Shown: positions 28,254 to 60,891, counted from the first letter of the stretch. The stretch is 64,000 nucleotides of DNA from Amphiscolops sp. MND2022 (GCA_964187785.1 OZ076414.1:62001-126000), one strand, 5' to 3'. Made by a program: numbers and translations. The notes: a model not told the origin generated them from the letters alone.

Positions 28254-28481
28254 ACTTTACATCCTAATTTCGTTATTAATGCTGGTTTTAAATGTTGTTC
28301 CCTTTGTGACGTTGTATTTCTATAATGTACCCTAGTCTTAAATAATCGAAAAAAAATCTGCACACAAAAGATTGTTTTCAAACAGAAGTGACTGGTGCAA
28401 AGGGCTCAAAGCAACAAGTTCTAATTAAATCTAAATCTTACTGGTACAAGAAATCTCACAGGAAATATGTTTTCCGAGGCA

Positions 28482-29848: not shown

Positions 29849-30024
29849 AGTTCAACCTTAAATCTTACTGGTACAAATTTCAACAAAAACAAAGATTGTT
29901 TTCAAACAGAATTAACCTGTGCAAAGGTCGCAAAGTAACAAGTTCTAATGAAATCTAAATCTTACTGGTATATGTTTCAACAAAAACAAAGAACTATTTC
30001 TTCTTTTTCAAATAAACCCCTGGT

Positions 30025-33000: not shown

Positions 33001-34440
33001 AAGACTCTTTCAAAGCATTAGCAATAAAAGTTTTGGTTTACCGCAATTATCTTTTGTTGAAGCTTCCCCAAAGGGACCGCATATGCTGGGATTCGCGGAC
33101 GTTCTTGTCATTTTTGTAGTCGTCATACTTGTTGTCGTTATCGGGGCTAAAAACATTTTCAAGAAAAGCATTAAATCATAATCAATACAACTTCTTTCGA
33201 ATTTCGAAAAACTAACACAATGTTGCCTTTCTCTTCTGGGGCGATGTTAGTTTCGTTGTTGTTTTTGAGGCTGAAAAAACATAAATCAAGCAAAACGTTG
33301 AAAACACTAATCAAATCATCATCAGTGAAACTTCGAAATACTAACAAGAGGTTGCTCTTCTCTTTCGAAGCTTCGGCATTCTCATGGTCGTTATCAGCGC
33401 TGAAAACACTATTGTCAAGAAAAGCATCTAAAACCTAATCAAAACCACATCACTGAAGCATCGAATTACTAACAAGAAGTTGCTCTTCTTTTGCGAGGCG
33501 TTGTTGTTCCCGTGGTCGTTAACGAACCTGAAAACAATTACGTAAAAAACGCATTGAACATCTTAATAAGTTGAACATCAGATAACCATCGAAGTACTAA
33601 CAAGATATTGCTCTCCTTCTTCCGGGCTTTGGCATTCTCGTGGTCGTTGTTGCCGCTGAAGACACTACTAACAAGAAAAGCAGTGAAAGTCCTATTTAAT
33701 TTCACATGCAGTCGGGAATTGAACTGAAAAACTTATTCAACACTAACGAGTGCCAGACATTCTTCCTAACGGTGGAGTTGGATCCAGCTCCTTTACAGAA
33801 TGAGAGCCAGTGTAGTCTCTTGTAATTTGATAATTCGTTTTACCCGTGGACGACCGAGCGGCTACGTTGCTTCCATAGTCAGCCCAGCTGGCACCTGCTT
33901 TATGTCCTTTTTTGTAGTGGTCCACATTCAGAGGAAGGAATGCCTCTTTCCTCATTAGAGTGTATTTGAAAACTTGTTTTTCATGCGTCAGCGCTTGGAC
34001 AACTTCTCGAGTTGCTGCCAAGTACTCATCAGCATAAGAGTCTGGGTCTTTGAAATCCCTTTCCTGAAAATCCTTGTACGTCTTGTTCATAATCGCCTGT
34101 GGATTCGAATCTTCGATTTGCTTTCGCTGCCATTTGCAGTCGTAGTTTAAAGCATGCTGAGCAGTTGCCGCGGGACAGGTAAACTCGAAAAATTTCATTT
34201 CACCATCTTTGTCCCTCTTGGCAGTGCCTTTCATGCCACAAAACATGCATGTTTTCCATTTGTTTTTCGTTATCAAATCTTCAGCTGCTTTCAAAACGCA
34301 ATGTGACACATTACCCCGGCGTCTGTGCTGCTTCAGGGTCTTGGCGTTTTTGAAACTCTCTCCACAATCTAAAAGCATCAACAATCGATTCATAAAATAC
34401 CTCACATGCGGCCCATCAAGAAGTCGTTGAAAAAAAATTG
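30025..34440 (-). CDS. Multi-exon JmjC histone-demethylase-like protein, KDM2/KDM7 type (element A)
   Basis: FADWHVDFSGTSVFYVLLAGEKEF...LIPAGTLHFVSTIANSVAVGTNFL has the H-x-D...H triad and conserved Lys. Exons inferred at ~34370-33748, five micro-exons, a Pro-rich exon ~32424-32090, ~31975-31865, ~31700-31370, ~31060-30523, ~30382-30025. 5' end unresolved. Confidence 0.85.
32560..32900 (-). repeat. Diverged inverted copies of the 184-bp repeat
   Basis: Reverse complement contains AAATTGAATTGGGAGGTTCTAAAT and GCAAGAGACTT...ATTTTTGTGCTT, matching the 34.6-35.3 kb units. Confidence 0.75.
33042..33655 (-). other. Tandem micro-exon array in the JmjC gene: four 54-nt exons and one 105-nt exon
   Basis: Exons 33602-33655, 33474-33527, 33346-33399, 33217-33270, each with a ..TTCAG acceptor and GTTAGT donor at ~128-bp period, plus 33042-33146. 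All are phase 1-1 and free of stops. Confidence 0.8.
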
Positions 34441-34554
34441 AATAATTGCCAATAATGGATTTGTTTCCCCACAAGAGACTAAAACTAAAGAATAAAAATT
34501 TATTGGATGCAAAATGGGAGGTCCAAATTACACCAGATTGGGTGTTCAAAACAA

Positions 34555-35300
34555 TGACAAGTACACATGCAGGAGGTTTCAATGAACAAATTTTGGCTTC
34601 GATTTTTGTTTTTTAATTTAATTTGAAATGGGAGGTTCTAAATACATCTAGGGATTCAAAAAATTGACATGCACACATGCAGGAGACTTTCACAGAACTT
34701 TATTTTGTCTTCGATTTTTGTGCTTTTCCGTAAAAAACTGTTTTGGCCACTTATTGATGTACGTCATAGAGAAAAACTGAAACACTGGGAGAATTTTTTA
34801 TTAAATCTGAAATGGGAGGTTCTAAATACATCTAGGGATTCAAAAAATTGACATGCACACATGCAGGAGACTTTCACAGAACTTTATTTTGTCTTCGATT
34901 TTTGTGCTTTTCCGTAAAAAACTGTTTTGGCCACTTATTAATGTACGTCATGGAGAAAAACTGAAACACTGGGAAAATTTTTTATTAAATCTGAAATGGG
35001 AGGTTCTAAATACATCTAGGGATTCAAAAAATTGACATGCACACATGCAGGAGACTTTCACAGAACTTTATTTTGTCTTCGATTTTTGTGCTTTTCCGTA
35101 AAAGCTTTTTTTTGGCCAGATATTGATGTACGTCATAGAGAAAAACTGAAACACTGGGAAAAATTTTTTATTAAATCTGAAATGGGAGGTTCTAAATTCA
35201 TCAAAGGATTCCAAAAATTGACATGTACACATGCCGGAGGCTTCATCGGAACATTATTTTGGCTTCGATTTTTGTGCTCTCCCGTATAAAACTTTTTTGG
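34555..35300 (+). repeat. 184-bp tandem repeat, ~3.5-4 copies
   Basis: Near-identical ORFs at 34669 and 34853 (offset 184); further copies at ~35030 and ~35216. Confidence 0.93.
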
Positions 35301-36260
35301 CCAGTTATTGGGGTATTGAATCTGTGGGTGGGGTTGTAACTAACAGAAAAGATCCAAAACTTCATGAAATAATTGTAGTATAAAAATTGTGGATATAAAG
35401 ATACAAGACTGAATAAGATTGAACCAAAAAATAGAAATTCTGTTAAAAGGGTTTGTTTACATTGTCGAAAAATTGTTATATTATTCAAGGTTTCTCGTTA
35501 CAACAGAAAAAATAGAAGGATCCAAGCTTTTGCGATAAGCAATAATTACATGCAAATTTGTGCTGAAAAGGCAGATTAGTTAGTTATACGCCTATTTGGT
35601 AAATAGACTCTGATTATCTCTAGGCGTGAAATAGACATAACTCAGTTCGTTGCACTATATTTCCTTGTAATATATAACTCAATTCATCGTAAAAAGATGT
35701 ACCATCTTTTCATCGTAGACTATTGCTTGATAGGTCATCTTTTACAAAGCCCTATACATATATATTGCAAAATTGCAGAGTTGTTTAACTTACCATCGCA
35801 TACAGGCATTATTAGTTAGGATACAGGATACAGCATACAGAATACATTGATACAGAATACAGGATTAGTTAGCTAAAGCCGAGAAGTAACAGATCAACAG
35901 GTTAAACAAGTTGATGTGCGAAGTAAAGTGAGATGATGCTTGTTTAAATTTTTGAAATTAATGAATGAAGGCAGCTGAATTTGAAACAATGAAATGTCAA
36001 TGTAAAATAAATCAGACGCACGCTCAATTTTGAAAAAAGTTCAAGTAAATTGAAGCCATTTCTTTAAAATAGTCGATGCCTTTTCTTAGCGGTCAGAAGA
36101 TCTCAGCATTTCAACCAATCAAATTTCAGCACTGTCGTTACTTGTGGTATTTTCAATGACAGTTGAATGCGCATTGCAAACTTTGGTAGGATCAATTGTG
36201 TTCTGTCGAGTACTGTTGAACAAAATTGATGCCTGTTCTACACTTTACACAATCATCTGG

Positions 36261-37200
36261 AATACTGTTTAAGGAAATCGATGCACACATTACTGTCGAA
36301 TACCGTTTAAGTAATTCAATGCACACATTAGTCTCGATTACTGTTTAAGAGAGTCGATGCACATATTAGTCTCGATTCCTATTTAGGAAAGTCGATGGAC
36401 ACATTAGTCTTAATACTGTTTAAGAATGTCGATGCACAAATTAGTCCTAATACTGTTTAAGAATGTCAATGCACACATTAGTCTCCAATACTGATTAAGA
36501 ATGTCGATGCGCACACATTAGTCCTAATACTGTTTAAGAAAGTCGATGCACACAAAAGTCTTATGACTGTTTAGGAAAGTCGATGCACACATTTGTCTTA
36601 AGACTGTTTAAGAAAGTCGATGCACACATTAGTCTTCAATACTGATTAAGAAAGTCGATGCACACATTAGTCTTAATACTGTTTGAGAAAGTCGATGCAC
36701 ACATTTGTCTCGATTACTATTTAAGAGAGTCGATGCACATATTAGTCTTCAATACTGTTTAGGAAAGTCGATGCACACATTAGTCTTAATACTGTTTACG
36801 AAAGTCGATGCACACATAAGTCTTACGACTGTTTAGGAAAGTCGATGCACACATAAGTCTTAAGACTGTTTAAGAAAGTCGATGCACACATAAGTCTTAA
36901 TACTGTTTAAGAAAGTCGATGCCCACATTAGTCTCGATTACTGTTTAAGGAAGTCGATGCACATATTAGTCTCGATTACGGTTTAGGAGAGTCGATGCAC
37001 ATATTAGTCTCGATTGCTATTTAAGGAAACCGATGCACACATTAGTTTTAATACTGTTTAAGAAATTCGATGCACTCATTAGTCTGCAATACTGTTCAAG
37101 GAAATCGATGCACACATAAGTCTCGACTACTGTTTAAGAGAGTCGATGCACATATTAGTCTCGATTACTATTTGAGAAAATCGATGGACACATAATTAGT
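36261..37200 (+). repeat. Minisatellite array 2, same 37-38-bp unit, ~25 more diverged units
   Basis: Same unit and same orientation as array 1. Confidence 0.95.
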
Positions 37201-37675
37201 CCCCCTGTTAAAGGAACCCAAATTGACACTTTCAAAACTCAAAAATTGAAATTCCTCAATTATTTCATCCCCACGAATAAATGTTTTTTTAGTCAGCCTA
37301 AAAAAGTCAGCAGATCAGTTTAAAAACGTTCTGTAATCAACTAAAGTAATATGTATGCGTAGTTGTAATCAATCAAGAGTCGACTCAATTTCAGGCGTGA
37401 TTACAGCCGATTGCGTGTAAAATGAGCCGACCAGTAATTGAGAGTTATAATCCTTGTAATTATCACACCAATCTTCAGCATTCTATCAAACACTCTTGCA
37501 ACGCAAATCAAGAGTCGACTCAAATTCAGGCGCTATTAGAGCCAATTACGTGTGAATTGAGCCTACTAGTTTTTTTGAGTGATAATCTTGTAAATATCAT
37601 TCCAATCTCCAGTTAACTGTCGAACACTTGCATTTCAAAACTGCTGCTTCGAGATAAAAAACTCTACATCCCGAC

Positions 37676-40393
37676 ATGAGCCAACAAACTCCTGTTCTGC
37701 AACTTGAGAACTTCGTTCCTTGTGTTCAATCAACGAATATGATAAGCACCCTTGAGTCTAATTTCGCTGAAAACGCAGAAATACTGGCTCCTGAAGTTGT
37801 AGATTCTCACTTACCATCAACGAATATCATGAGCACCACCGAGTCAAATTTTGCTAAAACCGCGGAAGAACTGGCTTCTGAGAATGGAGAGACTCAATTA
37901 CCAGCATTGAAAAAATTGAGCTCCGTCGACTCAAATTTTGCAAAAACTGCAGAGGAACAGGCTTCTGCGAATGGAGATCCTCAATTAACATCGTTGGTGC
38001 TTCCACAATCTTTATCTCAACCTATCTTCTCTCAGACTCCCGCTTTCAGCACTTCTGCTCACTTGCTGAGAGGGGTGACTGAAATTCTCCCAACGCCGCC
38101 TGCTACTCCTCGGGCTAATACACAGGCCGTAAATGGTTCTTTCGATTACCAGTTCATTCTTCCAACTTCGACGCCACTCAACCCAAGTACATCTCTTCCT
38201 CAGCTGACCGATTCAATGATAGGTGACTTTATTGCAACGCCGAGTGAGCTGACAATGAACGCCATCACTTCAACTCAATTCCGGTTCCAACCTGCTCCAG
38301 AGAGCAATCCGGTTCAACAAGTACTTTCCGAAGTTCGGAGGAAACGAAAAAATTCGTGCCAGAATGAGGAAGAAAACGACGAGTTAGCACGTGCGTCGAA
38401 ACGACAAAAAGTCAATGCAGAGAGTTTCGTTAGGAGCATCAATGTTGCTTATGTCCAGAATCGAGCGTTTCCAGCCGATGCATGCGAAGATCTCATGGGA
38501 GATTTAGTGGAACAGTTCGAGTTTTCATCTCGCCTCTCCTTCACTGACAGGAAGACGTTACACAATTTGATAATTGTTTACCTGATGGAGTTCGCAGAAC
38601 CAAGATGTTCAACAGCTGAACTAGAAACCTTCACAGTGAATTTGTTTGCGCAGACAATCCCGGAACTTCAAGCCAAGGCGGATACTCGAGGGACAGTGAC
38701 CTTAACCTGCGCGAACACGAGGACCCCTGGTGGTTTCAGGTGGGTGGAAAATTGTTCGAAATTAGTTGCATGGAACATTTCTGTGAAAGAAAAAGTGTTT
38801 ACGTGAAAAATGTCTTGGAATACTTCAGTGAAAACAGTTAGTTCAAAAAAATAAGCAGCGTCAAAATACTTCCCTAAATATTAGTTTCCTAGTCACAAAA
38901 TTCGTTTTACAGATCGCACACAATCTCTTGGATAGTGGGAAGGGGCCTGCAAGTCTATTACTCAGACGTACGTCCGAATTTCAAACCAAAGATTGGAGTA
39001 CCTCAGATGCAAACACGATTTCAGGGAAGTGAGAAGCTGGTTTGGACAGAGCCTTTCTTCTTCAATTCTACCGGAAACACCATTATCAACTTCCGAGATA
39101 AGTCAAAGAAAGAGATGGTCAAAGTGAGTCTAAGAATTCATGCAATATGAAAGGGACATATGAAATAGCCAAAAAATTGTTTTTGGAATTTGTTTGGATT
39201 GTTTATTGTTTTTAGAGAAATTTTAGACTAAATTTCAAAATGATGGAATAGTTTACGTTTCGTGGCAGTTTCGAACATCGTTCCTCTGTGTTCGAAAACT
39301 ATTATTCTACCATTTTCACCAAAACTCTTTCACGCAACATTTAGGGTCTTTGAATATTTGTTTAAGGAATTTGGTGACACTTGGAAGATAACAAAACATA
39401 ATATAATTTTGATCTATTTTCTCTACGTCTAATTTGTTCATTTCTTGCTTATTACAGCTGAGGCACAACTGCAGAGATGAGAATTTCGCCCTCAAACGTA
39501 TCGTCAGGCTGAAAACACCTTCAACTTACGAGCCGGAAGAACTCTTTCCGTCAGTGCAGCATGTCTCCAATCTGTTGTACAATTCAATTGGAAGAGCTGT
39601 CAACTTCGAGGATTTGACAAACCTTGTCACTAAACGATTGCAGACGCTAAGGACTGAACGCTTCTCCACGCAGGTTGAAGCCTTTGCCGATGAGTTTCGC
39701 ATCAAAGCAAATCCCGAAACGGACTATGCCAATTTCTTTGACCATGCATTCCGACAAGGGTGGAACACGTGCAAGGTTGGGTCATGGCAAGACGGGAAAA
39801 TCAAATCCAAGCTACATAAAACTCTATTGGACTACCGGGAAGGAAAAAGCGCCCAAAAACCTCGAGGTGCACCCTTCAATTCGAACTTGGAGTACAAGAG
39901 CAGTGTCTCAAACAACGAGGGTTGGCAATACGACTTTTTACACCGTGAGGACACACAGACGTGGGACGGGATCACCTGTGTCACATATCCTGACATGGGT
40001 CGTGGCGTGATGACACTGAAGCCGTTTAAAAAGGGCGATGTCATTTGCGACTATCATGGTTGTCTCGTTGACGAAAAGGATGCAGCCTCGTACGCTGCAA
40101 GAACAGGCCGTGACATGTCCTATATAATTGAAGTTTCAACAGACATTAGGCGTCTTGTCGATGCATCCAATGAGGACTGTCCTCACCATCCCCGAAATTT
40201 GTGCCTTGGAAGACTATGCAATCACTCAAGGCTCAGGAATAAGCAGTGCACAGCCCGCTTGGGGGAAGTAGTTTGCAGAAAACTCCCTCAAAAGCCTAGA
40301 AAAGTGGCACTGGTTGCACTCAGAGACCTTCCCCCTTTCACCCAGGTTCTGTTTGACTATGGCGATCCTGCAGCATGGAAAATGTTCAACTGA
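37676..40393 (+). CDS. Multi-exon SET-domain protein, SETD8/PR-Set7-like C-terminal SET (element A)
   Basis: GRGVMTLKPFKKGDVICDYHG...VDAS...CLGRLCNHS...ALRDLPPFTQVLFDYGD. Upstream exons (37676-~38780, ~38915-39130) are homologous to those of the element B SET gene. Confidence 0.88.
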
Positions 40394-41265
40394 TTGAACG
40401 AAAAGACACAACTGTTGGATGAAAAACATTGAACTTTTGTTGTATTTTGATTATTGTTGAAATCTGTTGTCTTTGCTCACTTGTTAAAAAATCTTTTGTC
40501 TTTGTTCTTTGGTCTTTTCAGTTGTCTAGGATTGTTCAATTGAATCAGGGACCTCTTTGATACCATGGCTCTAGAATTTAAATTGTATTCAAATATTTAA
40601 ATTTAAATAGAATTTAAAATCATCAACACCAATAAGAAGTAACTTTGATTTATCAAGATTTGAGAAGATCCCAACTCTCGCCGAGAAAATTGATGTTCAT
40701 GGCAATGGCCTTGTTCAAATTCGAAATTGTTTAAGATTTCCAATTCCCTGGCATTTACAATACGATTTCTTCAAGGTTTGCAGTTTATTGAATGAGATAT
40801 CAGCCGATTCGCCCAAATAAATGGTTCAAATACAGAAATGTTCAGGATTTGCACTTTATTGAATAAGATATCAACAGAGATTTGATTCAGTATATGTCAT
40901 TGGCTGTAATAATACCAGAATAATATTGCAATGGATACTATAATTCAAATCAGGAAATCTAAGAATACTCACAAGTTGTATAAGGAAGCCTATTTTCAAC
41001 AAGTTTTAAGCGTATTAGGATTTATAATACAAAGTATCAACATTACTTGTTTTGAGTACTAGGATTACTTATAACGTGGGGGGAAACATTTTGAGGCATT
41101 TGTATACGAATTATAAGGAATCTGATAATTATCAAATCTAAGGAAACTGAATACATTTGTAATGTATTAACAACTGAAAAATGTATCAGTAATACCAATA
41201 CTTCAATGCATATTGGCTTATAAGGAAAACTTAGGCATTTTAGACACGTATATTTACGCGCACTC

Positions 41266-41286
41266 TGAAAGTTGTGTCTTGTAATG
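41266..41286 (-). repeat. Right TIR of element A
   Basis: TGAAAGTTGTGTCTTGTAATG, reverse complement of 21918-21938. Confidence 0.96.
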
Positions 41287-41909
41287 ATGACTGGTCACGA
41301 CTGACGACCACGAGTGGACAAGTAGACTTCAGACATAGTTTCACGTTTCAATGACAGTTCATTTTTGTCTAGAATTGTGCTATTTGAAATCAAATATTTT
41401 ATATCCAAAGTTGTTTTGTTCATAAAGTAAATTTTATTTCAGTTTAATTTTTTTTTAATTCAGACTTTTTTCATTAAATCTAAGACTCCATGAGTGTACG
41501 ACTCCATGAGTGTATGAACAACAGGTGAGCAATATTTTTATGATTAAATTAAACCCCGGGGCGTATTCCTAAATACCTATAAATGACTAAGAAAAAATGC
41601 AAAATTATCTAAGTGAACAGTTGCAGTTTTTGATTCTAAATCATTTGACTCTGATTCTGGACTTGGAACTTTTTTGCTACTAGTGTTTCTGAATTAGCAA
41701 AATAACGACTCCATGAGTAAAAACAGATGCTAAAGAACATTTTGCTGGTGCTCAAAGAAAACACGGGTATTGACATACACGTTAGTTCATGCGTGTTGTT
41801 GATGATTAAAATTAATAACGATGGACAGATCATGGTTCATGTGTGTCATTGACAGTCAAAATTAAAAAAAGAATAGGTGTCAAAATTAAATAAATCATTA
41901 AATAAATCG

Positions 41910-43377
41910 TTATAAATTGTCCACTGCTGAGTTATGTCGAATGATGTCCCTGTACGTAGTGACCGGATAAACTCCACCAATCAATGTGATACAGCACTTG
42001 ATGCACGACACGGCAAATGCTTTTTTGATCAGAAACCGCATCGTTTTGATGTATTTGTCACTTTGACTGTAAGTGCCAGCCTTTCGGTCCCACAACTTTC
42101 CCAACACTGAATCCCATGATTCATGTCACCCCTTTTCATCTGAGGGAATTGAGATATTGAATGTCATATCTCTGTTATTCTCAATTCCGAGGGCTGTCGT
42201 GGAGAGATCATCAGCCAAACACAAGATCCCTGCATATCCAGACCGCGACGATAGGGCCAGTCCCACAGCGTTCTTCACCGCTGCAAATAAGGAACACACC
42301 TTACTGATGGGGTGATCGACGCTGCCAACCAAATTTTCATTGATCTTTTCGCTCAAGAAGTTTTCTTCGAAGAAAACAACTCTGTTCCAGGGCATTGTGA
42401 TGGAAATGTCCTCGCATTGCTCTGACACCATTGTCACGAGAACAAGTGGTTGCTCTTTCTTCCATACCAGCTTCAGGCTGCGAATGATGGATAGTTCCCC
42501 ACAGTGATCCATCACTTTCCCACCTTCATGCAAAATCCCATTCACACATGGGAAATAGATAAGTGGAACTTCGTCGGTAGTTTTCTAAAGCAAATGAAAA
42601 CATCTACTATTTACCACAACAAACAGATTTCATGCTTTTGAACAAAGTTGCTTTCATGCTTGTTGAGCAAGTTCATGCTTGTTGCTACATTTTATAAATC
42701 AGCGCGTAACTTGCATAGATGTTACACTACTTTGTACACTTACGGGTATCATTGTCATCATATCGACCGGTTCTTTCTTCTTTGAGGAAACTGCAATCTT
42801 CTGCTTCTTTGTTGTCGGCGGCTGACTATTTTCAGTTTCGTCAATCTCATCGAGGCTATCATCGCTCTCGAACTCGTTTGTTTCAGGGACTACTTGAGCT
42901 GCTAAACTCCGCAGGTCGTCGTACTTTACTGTCAGAGTTCTGAAAGTGGTTGTCAGTTCTTCCAGTTTGCCCAGGTCTTGCCATTCTCTATACTCGTCTT
43001 CTTCAAATATCTTCATTTCACTCAGTACCGTGTCATTAATGAAAACAAATCCTTGTTTGATTTCACCTTGAATGAATTTGACTCGATCACCACGGGATTG
43101 GAATTTGGGCTGATAGTCAAGCAAAATTTTGTTCGCTCACCTTCTTTTTTTGGGGAAGTGTCTGGGAGGTAACTTTTGTCTTTCTAACATTCCACTTCTC
43201 CGATGTCTTTCTCACAGTGCTATTGATTTGTATTTTTGATTTTTCCTTTCCAAATTCTTTCCAGCGAACAACTACTTCCCACTCCCCGATAAATTCAATT
43301 ACTTCTGCCTGCCACCAAATGTAGCATTCGTCAAAAGCATCAACAATTTCGTTAAGTTTAAAATGCTTGGACAACAT
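41910..43377 (-). pseudogene. Tudor/Agenet-like gene of element B, with an apparent frameshift (~43120) and in-frame TGA (42126-42128)
   Basis: IVDAFDECYIWWQAEVIEFIGEWEVVVRWKEFG. LDYQPKFQSRGDRVKF matches A's LDYTKEKFAKGDIVYF, KG*H matches A's RGSH, and LGKLWD matches LGKKWD. The lesions could be assembly errors. Confidence 0.72.
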
Positions 43378-43688
43378 TCCGAATTAGTTTTTTTGCTATA
43401 AATACTGGGTAATTTGTAGTCAAATAGATTGAGTTTGCATAGAGTTGAATTAAAATCAAACAGGCTGAAGTCATATGGAGGTGAACAAAATTTTAACAGG
43501 TGAAAACTCGAGTCTCAATTTGCGTTCAATCTGCCACATGTGCAAAAAGTGTTAATTACAACCCGCGACGAGTTTAGACTCGTATTCTCACTTTAAAGAC
43601 AGTGTGGAACTCAATTTTTGCTCATACACCTTAGTCCCATTTTAAATATTGACTAAACTTGCATTACATTTCAACCAACTCATCAACA

Positions 43689-46600
43689 ATGGAAATCTGG
43701 ATCGATAATTCAATTTCCATCAACAATATTCAATACATTGATTATAATCTAATCGATCAAATTTCTGGAGTCAATGAGGGTAACAAATTTCGAGAAGCTA
43801 CGAAATTAACGAATCATGTCCTTTGTGGAATATCATTGAAAGCTGAAGATTTCGTCATCAAGTGGAAAACAAATGGCCAGACAAGACACAAGATTTACAT
43901 CGAGGTATGTTTTTAATTTCAACACTTTCAATTTCAACTTCCATAGTAACATTTTAACAACCTATTTGAACTTCTAAAGTATCATTTTCAAAACCCCAGG
44001 AATATCCAATTGTTCTAAGCAGCTTTTCTGTACCGAAACCATTACAACTCCAGGAGCATGCATCTTTGTAGAATATTTCTAAACTAACAACCTAACGACT
44101 CCGGGAGCATAGCTTTTTCTAAAAATACATTTTTTGTCAGGCACACGTGATGAAATTGATTTTGTTGAGTGGTGGGAAAAACGTACCATGGACAAACGCT
44201 CGAAGGGAAATCTTAACCAAATTGATGGGCGAAGATCTGTTTCCCACTGGAAACCAAGTGGTCAAACCAACACTGCTGAGTCAAGTGGTACACAGAACAA
44301 TTGGTACCCAAACTGGAACCGATGAGTCACTTGAACCCGTGAACAATCAATCCGCAATGCAGACAATTCCACCAAAACCCGAAAACAACCAGTCTACGAA
44401 TTACGTAGTTCCGCGAGGGAAAAGAGTAGTTAGACTCCAAAAATCTCCAATCGCCTACTGGAAGTTCGTTTTGCGCCATGCAAAAAGGAACAAAGTCGAC
44501 TTCAACGCTCTAATAGACGTCATCCTTCACTTTTCCAGAACAAAACAGCCAGAGTACTTAAAATCTGTCATTAAAAAAATCTTCCCTAACTTTCAGTCGC
44601 GAGAAACACTAATCTCCAATGTTGCGGTTTCTCTCAAGTCAGGAAAAGCAGAAGACTTGTTATTTACTCTATCTTCAAATTTGAAAATCAATAAACTAGG
44701 GAAATTCCAAAATCTCGTACCATTATATCGTGCAGTCCAGAGATACCAGAGTCAGATCATGGAAAATTTTATCTCGGTGTGTCAGCCTGAAGCCACCTTT
44801 TCTGGTTTCCGTTGTGATCTGGTGTCATGTGTCAAATTTGCTGCATGGATTCTTTACGAGAGAGAAGAAATATCTGAGCTCAATATAGATTTGTGGGGTG
44901 ATGGTTGTGAAATTGGTGGCATTGATCACACAAGACTGTGTTTCAGAATTTTGCAAGACTTCTCTGATAAAATTACAGCGCAATCATCAAGTATAACATT
45001 TTGTTTCAGTGGTAAGTTGTGGTTGTTTTTACTGATTCTGTAATTTCCAATTGTCACTTAGTAAGGTAATTTTATTACTGTAAAGAGTCCACAAAAATAA
45101 ACGAACAATTTTAGTTTAAATTCGTGAACCACTACCTTCAATTTGCACTCTCGCATGTTTAATTATTCAATTATAGATTCTTCACACCATGTATAGTAAT
45201 TGGTCGCTCGATTCTACTGCTTAATTTACCGTGGTACCAAATCTAAAACAATCGAGGGGTGTCAAACGTCATTTGGAACATCAAACGTAATTTTTGTTTT
45301 GATTTGTTAAGCATTCCGAGGCAAGGACAGCAGGTTCGTACTGGAGCAAAATTTGGGACCAGAGATAGCTGGAAAACAAGAAACGGGGTGGCTGTACAAG
45401 CAAACAAAAGAGTTGAGTACACAAGGGGCGGTGGTCACCTATTCCGGCGACAATCCTTTTCTGTACCGTCTCATATTGGCTATAGACAGCGATGCATCGA
45501 ACCAATACCCATCAGACTTGGCGCTGTATGTGGGATCTGAAAAGTATCTTCCAACAGATGTGGATGACTATACTGGTATGCGTCACAATCTGAAAGCTCC
45601 GTTCAGAGAAGAAATCCCACAAATCTCCCTTGTGTACCTTGAGGATATAAGATGTGTCATGCCAGATGTAACGCACATGATCACAAGGTGCGTAGAGAGT
45701 GATCTCCGCAAAGCTGCACAGAAAATAGTGAACGAAAAACCAGTGTACAAAGTGTCCCTACAGCGATTGGAAGAAAACTGTACTCGAAGGGCATTGAAAA
45801 AACCGAAATTTCAGTTTGACCTGCAAGTGAAAGGATCTGAATTGAAAAAAGGAATCGTTGGACCGGTATCGCTATCCGGAACATCAGCGCTAGTAGCTAT
45901 CGCTGATAGAGAAGAATTTGAACAAGACGTTCCGAATCTTTTTGAAAATGTGTGGGGAAATGAAATCCTTTTTGAGACGAGAGACAACACAAACAAACAA
46001 AATGCGCCAGCTGTCAGCAATGCCTTTTCAGTTCTGAAATCCATGCACCCACACATAGCAAAATCCGACACATTCACAACAAACGACTGTGCAAATCTCT
46101 TGCAGCATAGTTTGAATAAATGCACTATTATTTTGCGGGCATCCAAACACGGTCTAAACACGGAGCAATTCAAGTTTTGGTCTGAGTCATATTATCAATC
46201 ATCGTTGCTTCTCTTTTCCGGGAAAGACGGACTCACCCCCTACAAACTGAAAATGTTGCTAATCCCACAGATAATGGACGCAGGGTTTGTTCGGAGTCCA
46301 TGGCATCACATGTGTGAAGCGATGGAGAAGTCGAACCATCATGCTCACAAGGACTTCCAAACCAAAACAATGAGAGGCGGAGGAAAATTGTACAACCCTG
46401 ATCCTTTGTTCTATGAGGGTTTCTTTTCCTACTGCCATTACCTCGACATAGTTTCAAAACACAAAAGAATACCTGTGAGCGATACATTTGACAAGCTTCA
46501 GAAACAATTCGATCAGAAAACAACTTATTCCGAAATATGCAAAAATGTAGTCAAGCCTGCAATAATAGAAATAGGTGCCACTCGAGATTCAAGTAGGCTG

Positions 46601-47196
46601 CTGAGTGGACTTCGTTTTCACGTGGTTGGGCACTTTACTGGAACGACTGGAAAAGCTGTGGAGGATACAATTACTCGTTTGGGGGGGAAGTACTGAGTAA
46701 AGACAAAGCTCTTGGACTATCGAAGCGCCATTCCTCAACCCCAAATTGTTTTGTAGTAGTGAAAAATGACACTGAATTGCTTAAGGCAACGAAGAGTGAA
46801 ATCAGCTCCGCTTCTGGATCAGACAGCGACACGTGTTCATCGAACACTCAACGAAAAACAGCTCCAGCGAAAATAATGAAAAAGGCAACAAATCAAGGAT
46901 CAGTCAGGATATGCAAAGAATTTGCCGCCACCGATTTCAAGTTTTTGAGTGTAGCATACATTCAAGATGTTGAGAAAAAAGGCTGTGTTTTGGACCCTTC
47001 CGAATACTTGTTTGATAAAGGTGCGATTGAGCGAGCATGTGTCAAAGACCAACGTCCATTATTTGAGAGACAAAGAAATCCCGAAATATCAGACCTTGAT
47101 TACAGATCATTGATTACTTCATTGAAAATGTCAAGAAAGAGAGCAAGAGAAGAAGGACAACCAGACGATAAAATTGCTAAACTTTTCAGCAATTAG
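43689..47196 (+). CDS. DDE transposase (CMC/Transib/RAG1-like) with C-terminal BRCT domain (element B)
   Basis: Exons 43689-43904, 44141-45011, 45312-47196. Motifs DLWGDG, SGDNPF, PDVTH, CEAMEKSN, KTMRGGGK; BRCT-like LLSGLRFHVVG...ITRLGG...FLSVAYIQD. One -1 frameshift at the G7 run 46681-46687. Confidence 0.88.
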
Positions 47197-47868
47197 GCAA
47201 AAAATGTCGGGGAACTTTGATTTGTTTGAATATGGATAACAAGTATTTTACTTCAAAAAGAAATTTTTTTACGATTTTATCGTTTTCAAAAACCACAGCT
47301 TGCGTTTTAAAAGCGCACTAGAATTGAGAAAGTAACTGTTAAACATGGTTTGCAGAATCAATATATCAATATTAAACCATTTTTAGTTATTGTTTAAATG
47401 TATTGTACACTGATTTTAAACAAGCGTTGAATTTTGTGGATTCTTCAGATCGCAATAGCTCAGCTCGCGCTCAAAATGCGCTGTAGAATTGAGAAACTAT
47501 TATGCCTGGTTTGAAGAATCTATATATCAATGTTAAACCATTCCTAGTTATAATTTGAAGGTAGTATATTGCATTGTTTTTGAGCAACTGTTCAAGTCAG
47601 TTCAGCCAATTCTCAGCTTTGAATATATTACGTAACGACTCCGCGAGCAGATACAGTTCACAAAAACTTTTCTATACCAACTAGGTAAAAACTCCAGGAT
47701 CTTATTATCTTTTAAAAACGAATCAATTGGTAAACGTTGAATTTTAACCGAACATTTATTCCGAATACTCGGAGAGCAATCAAAATAGTATGGAACGCAT
47801 GGATCGAACAATCATTTAATTGAAAAGTTTTTCAAAATTCTGTTTTTTTTTTCAAACGGGAGGTAAGT

Positions 47869-50296
47869 TCATGGATCGAACAATCTCCTCGCTTCTTCAT
47901 CTCGATAGTCGAAGCGAAGTTCCTGGAATGCCGCAATGTCAGTCTTAGCTACCATGACCAGGACGTCTTTGTTCTGTGCTATGTTTACTAGCACCGGTTT
48001 CACATTCGCTTCCTTGGACGACTTGTGATTGATTAATCTCCCAAGGCACCGGTTGTTAGGATGTTCGTCGCAGATTTCCTTGGAAGCGTCGACTAAGTGT
48101 TTTTGCGAAATTCGGAAGAGATACTCGCTCTGGTTGCCGGGTATGTCAAGGTACTCTTCGCAGCTCATTCCTTTGATCTCTTCTCCGTGATAGTCGACAA
48201 GGATCTCTCCTTTTTCGACATTGGTTGTGGTTACTACTCCGCGACCCAAACCTTTCACGTGTACGTCACAGATTGATGGCCATTGCTGTGACTTAATTCG
48301 TCTGCCAAGAGCCCTCTTGAAGTTATATGTTTGTTCGTTATGGGGTGGCAGAAACAAGACATCGTGGCGAAGGGAAACTGTTGGAGTCTGTAGTGCCTCT
48401 GGATTCAATCGATCTGTGACAATCTTGAACGTCTGAAATTATTAGAACAACATAAAATTGTTATTCAAATGTTCTTTTATTCACTTCGCTTTAGCTATTA
48501 TATTGCTGGTAATTTTTTTTTTGTGCAGTGTAACTGAATCTTTCACATGCAAGGTAGCCGTAACTTTACTGAAGAAAAAAATCATTCCGTCAAATGCTGC
48601 TAGTCAAAAAAGATACATTTTTCAGGTCTTCTTCAGTGCTCCATGAGTTTTTGGCGTAAAAGTCTATGAGTCGCTGCCTGGTGGGTTCCGTGTGGTTGCG
48701 TTTGCTGCCACAAAACGTTATAAATTCTTTCGCTCGCAGAACTTGGCGGGCATATCGCTGCGCATTGAGGCGTCTGACAACGTAAGGACCCAGCTGTCGC
48801 TCAGTGACGTTGTAAATTGCAGCCCAGGCTTTGTCAACACCTGCCCAGATCTCAGCAATGGCCTGCGTTTTCTTCATGAATCCGGCATTGCTGGATGTAG
48901 GCAGAGGAAGCCTTTCGTTGACACACCCCAGCAGTATATCATCCACTGCCTCCCGGGCACTCTTTTCCATCTACAACAGAGTGAGAACGCAATTGTAAAC
49001 CAACACAACTGCGGAAAAATTTGAATTGTGTGATGATAATCTGACAAAAGAGATGTTACATGAGAGAACGAAAATGATACTTCTAAAAAATCCCGCACTC
49101 GCTACTTGAAACAACAAATTTTACAACTTTGAAGCCCTCAATGCTCCTAATGGTTCAATTTTTACCTTGTCCATGAACTCCTAAGCAATAGATCTGGGGT
49201 TGAAGTTCGCATTCCCTTTTGAAGTTACAAAGAAATGCTCCGTAGCAACCTCTTCGACGCCATCATCGTCCCGTTGAAATGCTCTCGTCACAGTACTTGG
49301 CGATTTCCGTTGGAAAGTCGGCCTCACATTGAGGTGATACACCCGCATCGCGTTCACCACCCATCGTTCGATACGGTGTTCCACTCGAATAGTGTTTCCT
49401 AAAACGAACTCAGTTCATAGTTTTAGATTTGGGCATTTATTTTGCCTTATATTCAAATTTATGTTCTCATATCAACAATTTATACGTCCGCAATCTATCT
49501 TGTTTAAACCGTGAAAATATAAAATTTCTTCGTGCCATATGCTACTAATTTGATATTTGTACAGAACATCCTACGTCGCTTTCAAGTTTTAGAAAAAAAG
49601 GTCCAGTATATTTACCCAAAGATGGTTCGAGAATCAATTTGCAATGGTCACAGTCGCTCAAGTCATCAAATTGTATTATAACTTGCGCGACGGCATGCAC
49701 TGTCACAGCCAAAATGCTTTTCGTCATCACTGTCACTGGCTCGGCATACATGTAGAGGTACGTGATAATGCCGTGGAAAAGGGATAATTGTTGCTGGTAC
49801 GTCAGCGCTCCACATTTGTCGTAAGTTTCTATAACCCCCTCTAACGTCTTTTTAATTTGGGGTCCGAATTTTTCTGACCACTGCAGTCGTGGCAATTTTG
49901 GTTCTGACTCTAAACACGTCTTAGCAGGAAAGTCGAGGATGCGCTTTAAGGATGTGCTTGTAGAAAGTGCACTCGTTTCGTATTGAGTTTTTTTGACTTG
50001 ATCGCTCGAGTGTGTAGAACTTGATGTGCTGCTTTGAGTGAAATACGGGGGAGGGGTGTTTTCGCTTGTTGCCAATATTTGAGAAAAGTTGGGAGGACAA
50101 GTGATCGTAGGGGCGATATAGGACTCGTGAAATGAGAAGTTACTTTGACTTCGATGAATCGACGCAGGAGTGCTATGAAAATGAATTTCATTAGGGGTTG
50201 TGGAGGTTGTAAAGGAGTTAGATAAGGACTGGACTGAGTATATTGCGTGAAGTCGCTATTACAAATTGTGATGTTTCTCAGAGTTTGTTCAGACAT
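47869..50296 (-). CDS. Multi-exon SET-domain protein, SETD8-like (element B)
   Basis: GRGVVTTTNVEKGEILVDYHG...VDAS...CLGRLINH...AKTDIAAFQELRFDYRD. Upstream exons 48590-48970, 49181-49384, 49545-50075 share YLYMYAEP/YLMEFAEP and VRP..F..TE.FF..S.GN with element A. 5' end uncertain. Confidence 0.85.
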
Positions 50297-50759
50297 TATT
50301 ATGAAATTTTAGTTTACTAAGATATCAGAGGGGAAAGCAAAAAGTTTGAAAATTGAGCTGCTGGGTACTGCAAGAGTAATCGGTCTAGAATAATGAGGAA
50401 TTTTTTTTGGATTGTTTGAGCTGCTGGTTATTGCGAGAGTAATCAGTCTAAATGATGGAAGAATTGATTTTGAATTGTTTGAGCTGCTGGTTATTGCGAG
50501 AGTAATCGGTCTAAATGATGGAAGAACTGATTTTGAATTGTGTATTTTTAGTTGTTAAATCAATTGGAAAAAACCGAACTCATTTTTGACGCATATTAAA
50601 CTGCCCATGATGCTGCATTTATTAGAAACGTTTATCTAATTTCTGAATTACATTCAGTCTGTCAAAAAGTACTCAAGTGAAAACTGAGTGCAAAATTAAT
50701 CGATCGCATTTGGTAGCATTTAAAAATTTGATGTTAAGAAGCTGATTATTTTCAATTAA

Positions 50760-53700
50760 GCTTTGACACCCCTTGATTGTATTAGATTTGGTACAATGGG
50801 TTGATTTCAAACTACACGGTGAATTACGCTGTAGAATGAGGGACTAATTACTATATATGGTGTGAAGAATCTATAATTAAATGATTAAACATGCGAGAGT
50901 ACAAATTGAAGGTAGTGGTACACGAATTCGAACTGAACTTGTTCGTTTATTTTTGTGGATTCTTCACAACAGGACTGCTATGAACCTACGTTCGTAAACT
51001 TAGTACAAAAACAGTTTGGTTTTTTGAATGTTTGAATTATCGAATACAAAAATAACGATAACCTATAATTCCATAAACCTTCAACTGAAAATTAAGCTTA
51101 TGGTCCCTAAACAATTGCTCCCGGAGTCGTTACAAAATAATGGGAAGGGTATAAAAAAACTTTATTTGATAAAAGCTTTGTCAAAAATCAATCATCACTC
51201 AGAACAAAATGAAAATAATATACAATTGAACGATCAGAGCAACGGAAGATCAAAGTCGTGTGAGTATTTATTTGTGTGCAATACATCAGCATATAGGGGA
51301 TGGTAGCGCAGTTGATATTTAAGATGGGTATGTAGTGAAGCTAGACGCGTTGTCTACCACCGGATCGATTCTCACATAGACACTGTTTGGCGACTCTATA
51401 CAGACCACTCTGTATTCCCCACATGTCGATTTGGTAAACGACATCGTTCCACTTCACAGCGATTGGACGGCATAATTGAAGATCCAATAAACTGCGCTAC
51501 TGCATCCCTTTTTGATGTGAAAAGGATAAATCAGTTGTTGATCGGTATTTTCCTTTACAGCGATAGGAAGGCACAATTGAAGATCCACTGCATCCAAGGG
51601 TGTTCAATAAATAGTTATGAGTGAGAATAATTGAAATGAATAAAATAAAATAATTTACTTCTACACTCAAATGAACAAAAATAATTATTTTTGAACCTGT
51701 TAAAAGAAAAATAATTATTCTCGAGATAACTAAAACTAACTAAGAACGTTTAATTCAACATATCGTCACCCATATAAATTCGAATATACAGAAATCTTGA
51801 GCTAATTTCCAGCTTGAGCTATAAATTCTTTTGACAAAAAATATTTTTTTCTAATATGAAAATAAAATACTTGATTTTAAGGCAACAAGAATATTCGAAA
51901 AAAGTATTGAACACCCCTGACTGCATCCCTTTTGATGTGAAAAAAAAGTTGATCGTGGTTATTTTCTTTCACAGCAATAGGAAGGCACTTTTGAAGATCC
52001 ACTGCATCCCTTTTTGATGTGATGCATCCCCATTCGTTATTTTTCACTGCGATACGAAGGCAAAATTGAAGGTTCAATACGCCACAGCATCCTTTTTTGA
52101 TGATGAAAACAGTGATGTCCATGTTCCATAACTAAAAAGAAATGAAAACTATTAAATCTGTAAACTGGGTATACTGAATTGATTTCAAATTTTGCGGCGA
52201 ATTGCGCAGTAGAATCGAGGAACTAATTACTATACATGGTAGGAAGAATCTATAATTGGATAATAAAACATGCGAGCGTGTAAATAGAAAGTTATGGTCC
52301 ACGAGTTCAAACCAAATTTGTTCGTTCATTTTTGTGGATTCTTCACAACAATAGGAAAGCTATGAACCTACGTTCGTAAACTCCGTACAAAAACGGTTTG
52401 AATTTATGTGTATTTGAATTATCGAATTACAAAATTAATGGTAACCTATGATTGCATCAACCTTCAACTGAAAACTAAGAATATGGTCCCTAAACAATTG
52501 CTCCCGGAGTCGTTACAAAATATTGGGAAGGATCATTTTTGCATCGAAAAAAATGAACTGATCGAACTCCACTAAAACGTACGAAAAAGCCACAAAATTA
52601 CCTGACATCACGTATTCGGAAGGATCCAAGACACAGCCTTTTTTCTCAACTTCTTCAATGTATGTCGCCTTACTAAGTATGGTTTTGAAAAGCTATCAAT
52701 CAAAAAAAATATTCTTTGATAAAAGAGGTTGTTATCAATCAATCATTACTTAGACCAAAGTAAGAATAGTATACAATTGAGCAATCAAATTCGTGTTAGT
52801 ATTTATTTGTGTGCGATACAACGGCATATAGGGGATGGTAGCGCAGTTGATATTTCACATGAGTATGCAGTGAAGCTAGACGCGTTGTCTACCACCGGAT
52901 CGAACCTCACATATACACTCTTTGGCGACTCTATACAGACCATCGTTTCACTTCACAGCGATTGGAAGGCATAATTGTAGATCCAATGAGCTCAACTGCG
53001 CTACTGCATCCCTTTTTGATGTGAAAAGGATAAATCAGTTGTTGATCGTTATTTTCCTTTACAGCGATAGGAAGGCACAATTGAAGATCCACTGCATCCA
53101 GGGGTGTTCAATAAACAACTTTACCTAAGAATAATTGAAATGAAAAAAATAAAATAATTTACTTCTACCCTTAAATGAACAAAAATAGTTATTTTTGAAC
53201 CTGTTAAAAGAAAAACAATTATTCTTGAGCTAACAAAACTAACTAGGAACGTTCAATTCAACATATCGTCAGCCAATTAAATTCGAACATACAGAAACAG
53301 CTTTTGTTGATATCCGTTTTTCGCTGAGAATAAAAATATTTCTTTTAACAAAAAAAATAATGAAATCGTTTGTTTTTTCACTATGAAAATAAAATAATTT
53401 AATTTTAGGCAACGATAATTATCGAATAAAATATTGAACACTCCTGACTGCATCCGTTTTTGATGTAGAAAAAGATCAGTTGTAAATTTCCTTCACAGCG
53501 ATAGAAGGCACTTTTGAAGATCCACTGCATCACTTTCTGATCTGCAAAAAGATCAGTTCTTTGTTGGTGCTTTTCACAGCGATAGGAAGTCATTTTAGAA
53601 GATCCACCGCATCTTTTGATGTGGAGAAAGATCAGTTGATCCTTGTTAATTTCTCTCACAGCGAGAGGAAGGCACTTTTGAAGATCCACTGCATCCCTTT

Positions 53701-53900
53701 TTGATCTGAAAAAAGATCAGTTGATTGTTGGTACTTCTCAATAAGATAATAAATGCGATATAATTGGATAATAAAACATGCGAGAGTGTAAATCGAGAGT
53801 ATTGGTCCACGAATTCAAAACAAATTTGTTCGTTCATTTTTGTGGATTCTTCACAACAATAGGACTGCTATGAACATACCTTTTAAAACCTCATGCAAAA
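50760..53900. repeat. Mosaic of internal duplications in element B
   Basis: 50.9-51.75 kb resembles 52.2-53.3 kb; recurrent TTTTGTGGATTCTTCACAACA and CCACTGCATCCCTTTTTGATG blocks. Confidence 0.85.
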
Positions 53901-54711
53901 ATGGTTTGCAATTTTGATTCAATTGAAAAAAACATGAAAAAATACATTGCAATTTTGTAACTAATGAAAAAATACAATGATCTTTGTAATCGCGTTGCCT
54001 AAGCTCGGTAAAAAGAATTTTCGAGTGGTAACTGTATCTTCAATTATCTTGGAACATATGGTACTGTTCGATCTCTTAGTTGAACAATTTGGGACCATGT
54101 GTTCAATTCCCCCCCAGGTACACCTTGCTGCGAATTCCCCCCCCCCCCGAACACGAAAACACATTTTGTTCTTGAATAAAAATATCTCACTAGTAAGAGA
54201 ATATTATATGAAAGTATATACTCAGAGGGTTGCCTCTACAACTGTTTGGACACTTCAGGTAAAAAAATTACCAAAATGTTTTGATATTATTATCCAAAAT
54301 AGCAGAAATTTGCGTTTTAAACAAACTAAAATTGTATAAAAAAGCCCCGAATTCAGCCCAAATTTTGTCCGCTATAAAATCAAATTAGCAATTTTTAAAT
54401 GACAGTCAATGTAATGGATAGGATTATGTCGACATCATTTATTATATTGGACCAAAATTTCAACGCAAACTATGTCGACATAATGGTTTTTGAACCTTCT
54501 GTCTTATTTCCTCCCCCCCGCCGCAGTCTGAGGAGGGGGGAATTGAACACATGGTCCACAATTTGTTCAACTAGGCAGGTATCTTGTCAACCTATTGTTG
54601 ATCATTGTTCTTTTAACCGCTACCACATTCCCCCGCCGGCAATTGACGGTTGGGAATTTCCATTAATATACTAATACAAGTAGTAAAAAGAACAACTAAA
54701 TTTGTTTACGT

Positions 54712-55326
54712 TTATTTGGTACAGTTGAAGTCATGCGCTGATGGAGCAATGGCAATGACGTCCCTGTACTTCATGAAATCAGACTGCAGCCAAGGCCTGA
54801 CTTCGAAAGAGCGCGTGGTGAACTTTTTTTCTGTAAGGCTCCATTCTGAAACAGTAACATGCAGTCGTAACATCTTGGAGCAAGTGTCTACGGGAGGGGA
54901 ACCATTGGATGACTTGGAAATTCGGGAGCATACAAATTGAAAGAAGATTTTTTTGAATGCAGATTTTGGACAACGATTACTTTGAAGGTGCAACTTCCTT
55001 TGAATGCAAAGGTACCATTTTATTCAAAACCAATTACCTCTTCGGTGGGTTCGGAGCGGCTGCGGAGTGGCTGCAATCTCTCGAGTGACCAAGGTGAGAC
55101 TGTCTACGGCCTCGCAGAGATCTTCTTCATCATACGGTGGCTGGTTGCATGGGGGGATGGCTGGTTGGAAATTGGAACCGACCATGATCATCGGTTTTCG
55201 ATTCAAGACGGGGGCCAAGTTCGTTTTCTTCAGGGAGACGGTCAAGAAACTTCCTCCTGAATATCGTTCCTTGCTTGGCTCCTCGTCGAACACAGCCATG
55301 TTGAAGGCAGGGAACACCTGTAACAA
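54712..55326 (-). CDS. Unassigned coding segments downstream of the JmjC exons (C-terminal exons or a separate gene)
   Basis: Two GC-richer open frames (55024-55326, 54712-54993) in an AT-rich background; no motif recognised. Confidence 0.4.
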
Positions 55327-55425
55327 ACACTTTTATCTTAACAATTTTATTGGGACCTAAATACTATTGAGATACTGTCAGGATACAAATCTACCCCTCG
55401 TAAAATTTATCAATTTTGGGATTGC

Positions 55426-60860: not shown

Positions 60861-60891
60861 GACTACAACAGATTTGTTGCAGTCACCATTT

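Follow-up and report, generated by a model that had tools for sequence, protein, structure and literature searches.

The nearest relative of known structure to the proteins described here is KMT5A (SETD8, also called PR-Set7), a strict monomethylase that contacts the H4 side chains R17, H18, R19 and R23; PHF8 is reported to act as a demethylase of H4K20me1 (PMC3874154). The switch Tyr of SET enzymes takes part in a hydroxyl/water network by which only a single methyl group can be added, and a Phe at this position abolishes that network (PMC3874154); the SETD8 Y334F mutant has been crystallised with both H4K20me1 and H4K20me2 (3F9W-3F9Y). SET genes carried by transposons are already on record, and the KMT5A-like family described here, with Phe as its default and an unusually labile switch, adds a variant to that record. 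We identified it in a 64,000-nt stretch of the Amphiscolops sp. MND2022 genome (OZ076414.1:62001-126000), called the window hereafter, always at its full length. The gene pair under study spans positions 37676-50296, both edges being the ATGs of the first open reading frames (ORFs) of gene 1 and gene 2. Our account, which we consider probable, is that these SET genes are spliced cargo of giant cut-and-paste transposons and that they encode active enzymes with a Phe switch and a role in chromatin.

Two genes face each other here, gene 1 on the plus strand (37676 to 40393) and gene 2 on the minus strand (50296 to 47869), and the terminal ORF of each matches the Pfam SET domain PF00856 (E = 3.7e-11 for gene 1 and 1.4e-12 for gene 2). 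When all PDB chains were searched by sequence, the best matches were to KMT5A/SETD8 only (gene 1, E = 2.5e-10; gene 2, E = 3.6e-11), with MLL1 next at E ~1e-7. Compared with each other, the SET domains of the two genes show 33% identity (E = 6e-25). An initial annotation of this DNA had claimed that they share DYHG, LGRL(C/I)NH and FDY(G/R)D motifs together with a C..HP...C insert, and each of these was located by its coordinates in both genes (Table 1). DYHG lies opposite EYHG of SETD8 (Tyr245) and LGRL(C/I)NH opposite LGRLINH, with the equivalents of Tyr245 and Tyr336 and the NH motif all retained, while the Cys/His insert falls at a gap in SETD8 directly ahead of LGRL in both genes. The same annotation had proposed Phe at the SETD8 Tyr/Phe switch, and the HMMER alignments agree with it: 'vlfdygdpa' of gene 1 is placed opposite 'llfdygdrs' of the Y334F chain 3F9W as well as 'llydygdrs' of wild-type chains, and 'lrfdyrdee' of gene 2 opposite 'llydygdrs'. 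Since the alignments pair FDY(G/R)D with (Y/F)DYGD of SETD8, the Phe of each gene occupies the Tyr334 position.

The predicted structure of the gene 1 SET domain points in the same direction. An AF2 model made from nine sequences reached a pLDDT of 70, with the insert below 50; a model made from a curated alignment of 104 rows (A2) reached a pLDDT of 94 and a pTM of 0.87. In a Foldseek comparison of the AF2 model with the PDB, places 1-25 were all taken by SETD8 structures (TM 0.65-0.72, 24-28% identity), among them the H4-peptide complexes 1ZKK and 3F9W, and MLL1 and NSD scored lower. The structural match takes in the N-flank helix and the C-terminal helix. The SETD8-likeness first proposed from motifs is thus reproduced by alignment and by model, the top sequence and fold matches being SETD8 throughout.

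We found that both genes lie within mapped transposons. Three other copies of element A, which carries gene 1, are present on contigs C4, C10 and C1 of the assembly and align exactly over 21918-41286 at 99.7-99.97% identity. Its terminal inverted repeats (TIRs) start with CATTAC, and a 2-bp target-site duplication flanks every one of four insertions (TSD; AT, TG, GC and TG). Element B, which carries gene 2, has a 22-bp TIR, CATTACGACGCCAATCGGGGAA, that also starts with CATTAC, and its three insertions show 2-bp TSDs of TT, TC and AA. In the copies of element B on C11 and C13, 21308-21917 continues straight into 41287 and onward at ~98% identity. Because copies of B elsewhere join these segments directly, element A sits as an insertion in element B; element A is young and nested in an older relative. 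From their CATTAC...GTAATG ends and 2-bp target duplications, the elements appear to be CACTA/Mirage/Plavaka-like.

Copies of the SET genes are abundant. A six-frame scan of the window's own 1.07-Gb assembly with the gene 1 SET domain as query gave 842 first-look candidates, 150 of which were scored, all 150 at E <= 7e-22; the gene 2 query gave 857 first-look candidates. The gene 1 SET domain occurs at nine places with 100% identity (the window's own included) and at five more with 99%, distributed over six chromosome-size contigs. The gene 2 SET domain has ~18 copies at 94-97% identity, with sub-families at 88-91%, ~72% and 55-57%.

Several individual copies show further arrangements. In the copy of element B at C13:47834000-47883999, the left 2-3 kb is duplicated or rearranged, with 21308-21917 and 41287-43731 each matched 2-3 times. 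At C2:53227125-53230116, the 72%-identity sub-family has four copies of its SET exon ~819 bp apart, a tandem array of this exon only. C1406:18106-108847 carries three SET copies that are identical, interrupted by a single TAA stop apiece and spaced by exactly 45,155 bp, which suggests a 45-kb tandem repeat that holds an element copy. A metagenome contig (ctg182554_104x_l, ENA ERZ25074608, 104x) contains a SET gene 85% identical to the last exon of gene 1 beside two copies of a 323-aa ORF, and a related organism therefore seems to carry the same element family. Within the window itself, positions 1-21000 have a strongly strand-asymmetric composition unlike the rest, seen in two segments: 1-8000 (GC skew +0.34 to +0.49, 32-35% GC) and 12000-21000 (AT skew -0.2 to -0.29, 45-47% GC).

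The gene 1 model yields a predicted product of 736 aa from three exons with GT-AG borders and an unbroken frame. Its exon 1 encodes three repeats of the SNFA(E/K)(N/T)AE type along with a basic patch, RRKRK, at residue 221; the repeats are in tandem at the protein N-terminus (window 37676-38000) and are of the type S-x-(E/D)-SNFA-(E/K)-(N/T)-AE-E. Pfam searches of the SET proteins' N-terminal portions detected no domain even with E values up to 5 allowed, and atlas searches gave generic or weak leads. In gene 2, the TFKIV... of the last exon is kept across sub-families, and the upstream ORFs are 37-49% identical to their counterparts in a sister element. The N-terminal regions of the two genes have only one weak block in common (28% identity, E = 7e-5).

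The pattern of divergence fits a coding gene with introns. Between gene 1 and a lineage whose SET domain is 92-93% identical as protein, the exons are 87-90% identical with one 3-nt indel, whereas identity drops to 63-67% in the introns, where many indels have lengths not divisible by three. The ratio of nonsynonymous to synonymous substitution rates (dN/dS) for the SET exon is 0.08-0.15 between lineages, at dS of 0.6-1.3, and 0.3-0.56 among recent copies within the family. The higher ratio among recent copies is expected if inserted copies decay while active lineages stay under selection. By these substitution rates, the SET exon is under purifying selection.

We then asked how widely this domain and its switch residue are distributed. 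A profile of nine sub-family representatives from the same genome (A1), searched against 1.84 billion representative proteins, gave 1878 matches at E <= 1e-3 and 55 at E <= 1e-30. The nearest matches are metagenome proteins and the farther ones multi-copy teleost proteins labelled 'hypothetical' or 'SET domain-containing'; a word-index protein search additionally returned five close relatives in ENA. In 166 domain alignments, drawn from the best 150 of the 1878 matches and five close homologues, the switch residue is F in 99, Y in 24, W in 17 and C in 4. The A2 alignment gives a similar picture, with F in 74, Y in 15 and W in 10 of its 104 rows, making the position aromatic in 99. Other positions in A2 are close to invariant: Tyr50 is kept in 100 of the 104 sequences, His51 in 101, Cys92 and His95 in 103 each, Arg103 in 102, Asn106 in 100 and Tyr152 in 98 (residue numbers of the insert count along the translation of window positions 39905-40390). 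The marks of the family present in both genes are DYHG, the Cys...His insert before GRLxNH, and [FYW]DY, and a short C-terminal helix, D-x2-A-x3-F, is a further mark beside DYHG and the insert.

The switch state has changed repeatedly. On a maximum-likelihood tree of the 104 rows, built with the switch column taken out, it changes at least 25 times, compared with a mean of 28.8 and a minimum of 25 for shuffled labels. Sister pairs that differ at the switch are found on well-supported branches, for example F/Y pairs with support of 99, 99, 97 and 95 and F/W pairs with 99 and 99. Because F predominates in the alignments and the tree shows repeated changes of state, Phe is, as far as aligned sequences tell, the ground state of this large KMT5A-like family, most of it transposon-associated, with Tyr and Trp as repeated departures. 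It is the usual state across the family and no special mark of the two genes in the window. The same genome contains a Tyr-type sub-family (LRYDYGD, 57% identical to gene 2; C2:9609574), carried by an 18.9-kb sister element with CATTAC-type TIRs and the gene order of element B: ZnF/JmjC, SET, transposase-like, Tudor-like. Six Tyr-type copies have the same or nearly the same score, so this sister also appears to have multiplied recently. A near relative from a metagenome has Trp at the switch.

Two other variations were observed in the family. A sub-family of ~30 near-identical copies (e.g. C1:60832769-60833233) has NY in place of the NH of the NHS motif that binds S-adenosylmethionine (SAM); across the family, the His position of this motif is H in 82, F in 12, W in 5 and Y in 4. 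Judging from this substitution, the NY-type copies may encode altered or inactive enzymes that are still propagated. In the teleosts Dissostichus eleginoides, Knipowitschia caucasica and Zoarces viviparus, multi-copy and sometimes multi-SET 'hypothetical proteins' of up to 3363 aa carry CxCHP...GRLINHS...LLFDYG; they may represent transposon genes that have gone unrecognised, or annotations that ran on through arrays.

The Cys/His insert is the other distinctive part of the domain. Cys92, His95 and Cys100 are invariant in the nine A1 sub-families (28-41% identity). Among the 104 sequences of A2, 57 have Cys94 (the 'CxCH' type), 43 have Cys100 (the type found in the window), 3 have both and 1 has neither. 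We considered this exchange as covariation (Fisher p = 2e-24) and rejected it: there are 3-4 changes on the tree with one supported independent pair, and because the changes are so few the Cys94/Cys100 swap is a clade character. Possible further ligands are Glu90, present in 67 of 104, and a Cys in the C-terminal helix, present in 20 of 104 (many of them CxCH-type) and corresponding to Ala157 in the window. A zinc-binding accessory site analogous to post-SET would have four Cys/His ligands clustered in space, and the count of only three conserved candidate ligands in this clade, like the failed covariation, weakens the case for one. The Cys/His conservation nevertheless fits a putative structural metal site, as the initial annotation had suggested, in which Cys92 and His95, with Cys100 in this clade, would probably coordinate a metal ion and so fix the loop that precedes the pseudoknot. 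This near-invariant insert may represent a new metal-stabilised variant of the SET fold.

Each element carries additional genes. The JmjC exon of element A matches a KDM7 homologue (E = 1.1e-16) and PHF8 (E = 6e-15) in the PDB and retains the HxD...H iron ligands, and the two 38-bp arrays flank this gene on both sides. The transposase-like gene of element A is 33% identical to its counterpart in the sister element; beyond a weak BRCT match, the transposase-like ORFs have no Pfam (E up to 5), PDB-sequence or atlas match. The Tudor label comes from a weak Tudor/Agenet atlas lead on the element A counterpart at 23187-24272, and the Tudor-like ORFs gave no Pfam match at E up to 5 and no PDB sequence match.

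Table 1. Features of the two elements and their SET genes, in window coordinates counted from the first nucleotide.
Feature	Position	Strand	Evidence or remark
Element A, 19.4-kb cut-and-paste DNA transposon carrying SET gene 1	21918-41286		Copies, TIRs, TSDs
Left TIR of element A, CATTACAAGACACAACTTTCA	21918-21938	+	Perfect 21-bp TIR
Right TIR of element A	41266-41286	-	Perfect 21-bp TIR
Element B, 20.2 kb without nested A, carrying SET gene 2	21308-60913 (21308-21917 + 41287-60913)		Copies, TIRs, TSDs
SET gene 1 exon 1	37676-38739	+	ORF; donor CAG/GTGGGT (slash marks the border); 87% identity to diverged copy, single 3-nt indel
SET gene 1 exon 2	38913-39123	+	GT-AG, frame kept; 90% identity to diverged copy, no indel
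SET gene 1 exon 3, C-terminal SET domain	39458-40393	+	Pfam SET, PDB KMT5A, AF2 and Foldseek
Gene 1 DYHG	40049-40060	+	Motif
Gene 1 insert CPHHPRNLC, C-x2-H-P-x3-C (Cys92, His95, Cys100)	40178-40204	+	Motif; residues invariant in A1
Gene 1 LGRLCNHS	40205-40228	+	Motif
Gene 1 FDYGD	40352-40366	+	Motif
Gene 1 switch codon, Phe opposite SETD8 Tyr334	40352-40354	+	HMMER alignment
SET gene 2 last exon with SET domain	47869-48432	-	Pfam SET, PDB KMT5A; provisional acceptor TTTCAG/ACG
Gene 2 upstream coding ORFs	48590-48970, 49545-50075, 49946-50296	-	ORFs; provisional exon borders, splice models ambiguous
Gene 2 DYHG	48184-48195	-	Motif
Gene 2 insert CDEHPNNRC, C-x2-H-P-x3-C	48046-48072	-	Motif
Gene 2 LGRLINHK	48022-48045	-	Motif
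Gene 2 FDYRD	47899-47913	-	Motif
Gene 2 switch codon, Phe opposite SETD8 Tyr334	47911-47913	-	HMMER alignment
Element A transposase-like ORFs	24537-28253	+	Weak C-terminal BRCT_2, E = 2.7e-4, below Pfam cut-off
38-bp unit tandem array, left side of A's JmjC gene	28481-29847		Repeat array
Element A JmjC exon, demethylase-like (KDM7/PHF8-like)	30517-31101	-	Pfam JmjC, E = 1.8e-6
Second 38-bp unit array	36261-37193		Ends 483 bp upstream of SET gene 1 ATG
Element B Tudor-like gene, head to head with transposase-like gene	42699-43377	-	36-46% identity in sister element
Element B transposase-like ORFs	44147-47196	+	Weak BRCT match; sister-element counterpart
Element B JmjC exons, demethylase-like	56011-56675	-	Pfam JmjC, two ORFs

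Taken together, we propose that each SETD8-like domain would be the C-terminal catalytic domain of a spliced transposon cargo gene, that the enzyme would be active, and that Phe at the switch would let more than one methyl group be added to the target lysine. Methylation past the mono state is predicted because of this Phe and the documented Phe/Tyr rule. The target would lie on a histone, where H4K20 is the leading candidate, given that the element couples its SET gene with a KDM7/PHF8-type demethylase; we regard H4K20 as a tentative assignment, and direct H4K20me2 writing by a SETD8 variant as a plausible possibility. The element would apply its writer/eraser pair, and perhaps a Tudor-like reader, to chromatin at or near its own copies, and this action would favour expression, transposition or repair of the element.

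The candidate substrate is itself unusual in this genome. H4 reads AKRHRKILRDN around Lys20, with Ile for Val after Lys20 (RHRKILRDN) and several other departures from the usual animal H4, and its exact sequence had no match in a collection of 15 billion proteins. The histone genes (H2A, H4 and H2B at C4:21121048-21174315) are arranged in long tandem arrays with a unit of ~3.63 kb on many contigs, including C67, C33 and C82.

A number of observations weigh against the account of an active, Phe-switched H4K20 enzyme. Past DYGD, the chain runs on for ~5-6 residues fewer than SETD8 crystal chains do (6-7 versus 12 residues past the aligned end), and for this reason a SETD8-style reading of H4 cannot be presumed. 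KMT5A/SETD8 is characterised by a PIP-box degron for CRL4-Cdt2, and no PIP-box (Q-x2-[ILMV]-x2-[FYW][FYW]) was found in the gene 1 protein or the gene 2 ORFs. A complex prediction for the SET domain with H4(1-40) of this genome and SAM scored 0.15 and 0.28 relative to a mark of 0.34, which weighs neither way on the substrate. As to expression and splicing, the run index lists no RNA runs for this organism, its four DNA-type runs coming from one sample. F, Y and W are scattered almost at random over the tree, which could mean that the switch position is weakly constrained, and Suv4-20 is an exception to the Phe/Tyr switch rule (PMC3874154). Finally, the gene 2 family is older, with 2-3% divergence and in-frame stops in several copies.

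The alternative that survives best is that the enzymes are active on a lysine other than H4K20, either at another histone site or on a protein other than a histone, for instance the transposase or a host factor for repair or silencing; this is a serious possibility, although it falls short of being probable. Identity to SETD8 is just 24-28%, the C-terminal flank is shorter and different, an extra Cys/His loop sits beside the active site, and the four H4 contacts of PR-Set7 (R17, H18, R19 and R23) need not be kept here (PMC3874154). However, SETD8 is consistently the nearest solved SET domain, and the JmjC gene that accompanies SET in the element belongs to the KDM7/PHF8 type, which has H4K20me1 among its substrates.

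It is less likely that the Phe is of little consequence, such that the enzymes are effectively monomethylases or have their product set by other residues, with F, Y and W exchanged by near-neutral drift. This would account for the almost complete lack of phylogenetic signal in the switch state (25 changes versus the shuffled mean of 28.8) and for Trp and even Cys at the position, and Suv4-20 shows that product specificity can be set otherwise (PMC3874154). Yet 99 of the 104 A2 sequences are aromatic there, and because only aromatic residues are common the position appears to be constrained; moreover, the SETD8 Y334F structures contain H4K20me1 and me2.

We consider it very unlikely that the copies in the window are decaying, functionless relics in which SET has not yet been broken. 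The divergence and in-frame stops of the element B family are compatible with such decay, as are within-family dN/dS values of up to 0.3-0.56 and the Arg that gene 2 has where its family has Gly in DYGD. In contrast, the gene 1 SET domain is 100% identical to eight other copies, the whole element is 99.7-99.97% identical to others, deep dN/dS is 0.08-0.15, and all catalytic motifs are intact in both genes.

The weakest alternative, that both genes are ordinary host SETD8/KMT5A paralogues in which Phe arose and which then assumed the direct dimethylation of H4K20, would explain the top sequence and structure matches to KMT5A and the C-terminal SET domain as in KMT5A, but it can be set aside as exceedingly improbable, since both genes lie wholly within TIR/TSD-bounded elements found at many loci at 98-100% identity and in hundreds of copies, no PIP degron was found, and the insert and C-terminal tail are unlike SETD8. 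The initial annotation was right about the SETD8-like sequence and fold and about the switch position, and its implicit host-paralogue frame has to be given up, as the genes are cargo of nested transposons.

The transposon-cargo reading can be extended into a more specific scenario, which we offer as a long shot. Here the elements would bear a self-contained H4K20 circuit: a SETD8-like writer whose Phe switch lets it produce H4K20me2 in a single step, an eraser of the PHF8/KDM7 kind, a reader resembling Tudor proteins, and a transposase with a BRCT tail. The circuit would build 53BP1-type repair chromatin at the element's own double-strand breaks or reset silencing marks on its own copies, and sister lineages would tune the product by Phe/Tyr/Trp swaps. 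Whatever the target, the family offers a natural test of the Phe/Tyr rule: related, recently active elements in one genome have Phe or Tyr, and a metagenome relative has Trp, which makes for ready-made enzyme pairs.

Compared with known systems, the SET domains are most like human KMT5A/SETD8/PR-Set7 (1ZKK, 4IJ8; Y334F, 3F9W-3F9Y), the nearest solved SET protein both by sequence (E ~1e-10) and by fold. Both have a C-terminal SET domain with GRG, (D/E)YHG, GRLxNH and DY motifs, and neither has Cys-rich pre-SET or post-SET regions. KMT5A differs in having Tyr rather than Phe at the switch, in lacking the 5-7 residue Cys/His insert before LGRL and in its longer tail; it is a single host gene, whereas the genes here are carried by transposons in hundreds of copies, and there is no relation between the N-terminal regions.

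As for the transposons, the closest parallel in cargo is with the giant Plavaka (CACTA/EnSpm) elements of the red alga Bostrychia moritziana with their accessory genes PAG1-3 (bioRxiv 10.1101/2025.02.11.637652), which are 17-19 kb long and, like the elements here, make up a large share of a ~1-Gb genome and carry a SET gene, a 2-oxoglutarate-oxygenase gene between tandem arrays, and an uncharacterised gene beside the transposase. There, the SET protein also contains an N6-adenine DNA methylase domain (PF01555), which was not found here, and the oxygenase, which is linked to ParB, escapes recognition by InterPro, whereas ours is a plain KDM7/PHF8-like JmjC; the two cargo sets are likened by description. 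PlavakaB/Mirage-type elements of the CACTA-Mirage-Chapaev-Transib group share 2-bp or 2-3 bp target duplications, CAT termini (CATCA..TGATG versus CATTAC..GTAATG here) and epigenetic-enzyme cargo, which in fungi is a TET/JBP dioxygenase and here SET plus JmjC (PMC12730594); this likeness is one of target duplications, termini and kind of cargo, the transposase here having no Pfam or PDB match. SET histone-methyltransferase genes are also described as accessory genes of Phytophthora HarbingerS and MuDR elements and of Helitrons (via PMC12730594 and the Bostrychia preprint). Those belong to other transposon superfamilies, and these sources describe no JmjC partner for them.

Finally, expansions of KMT5A-like genes have been described in Hydractinia (65 genes), Hydra (24) and Strongylocentrotus purpuratus (61), and these resemble the present family, by description, in comprising many divergent SETD8-like genes, mostly of non-canonical architecture (PMC10368294). 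That work treated them as host H4K20 methyltransferases and drew no transposon link, whereas here the element borders are mapped. Invertebrate 'KMT5A-like' expansions have hitherto been read in this way. Here, however, two such genes are accompanied by a matching gene of demethylase type in transposons that are mapped and were recently active, so some of these expansions, at least in part, may be selfish elements that carry their own chromatin enzymes.

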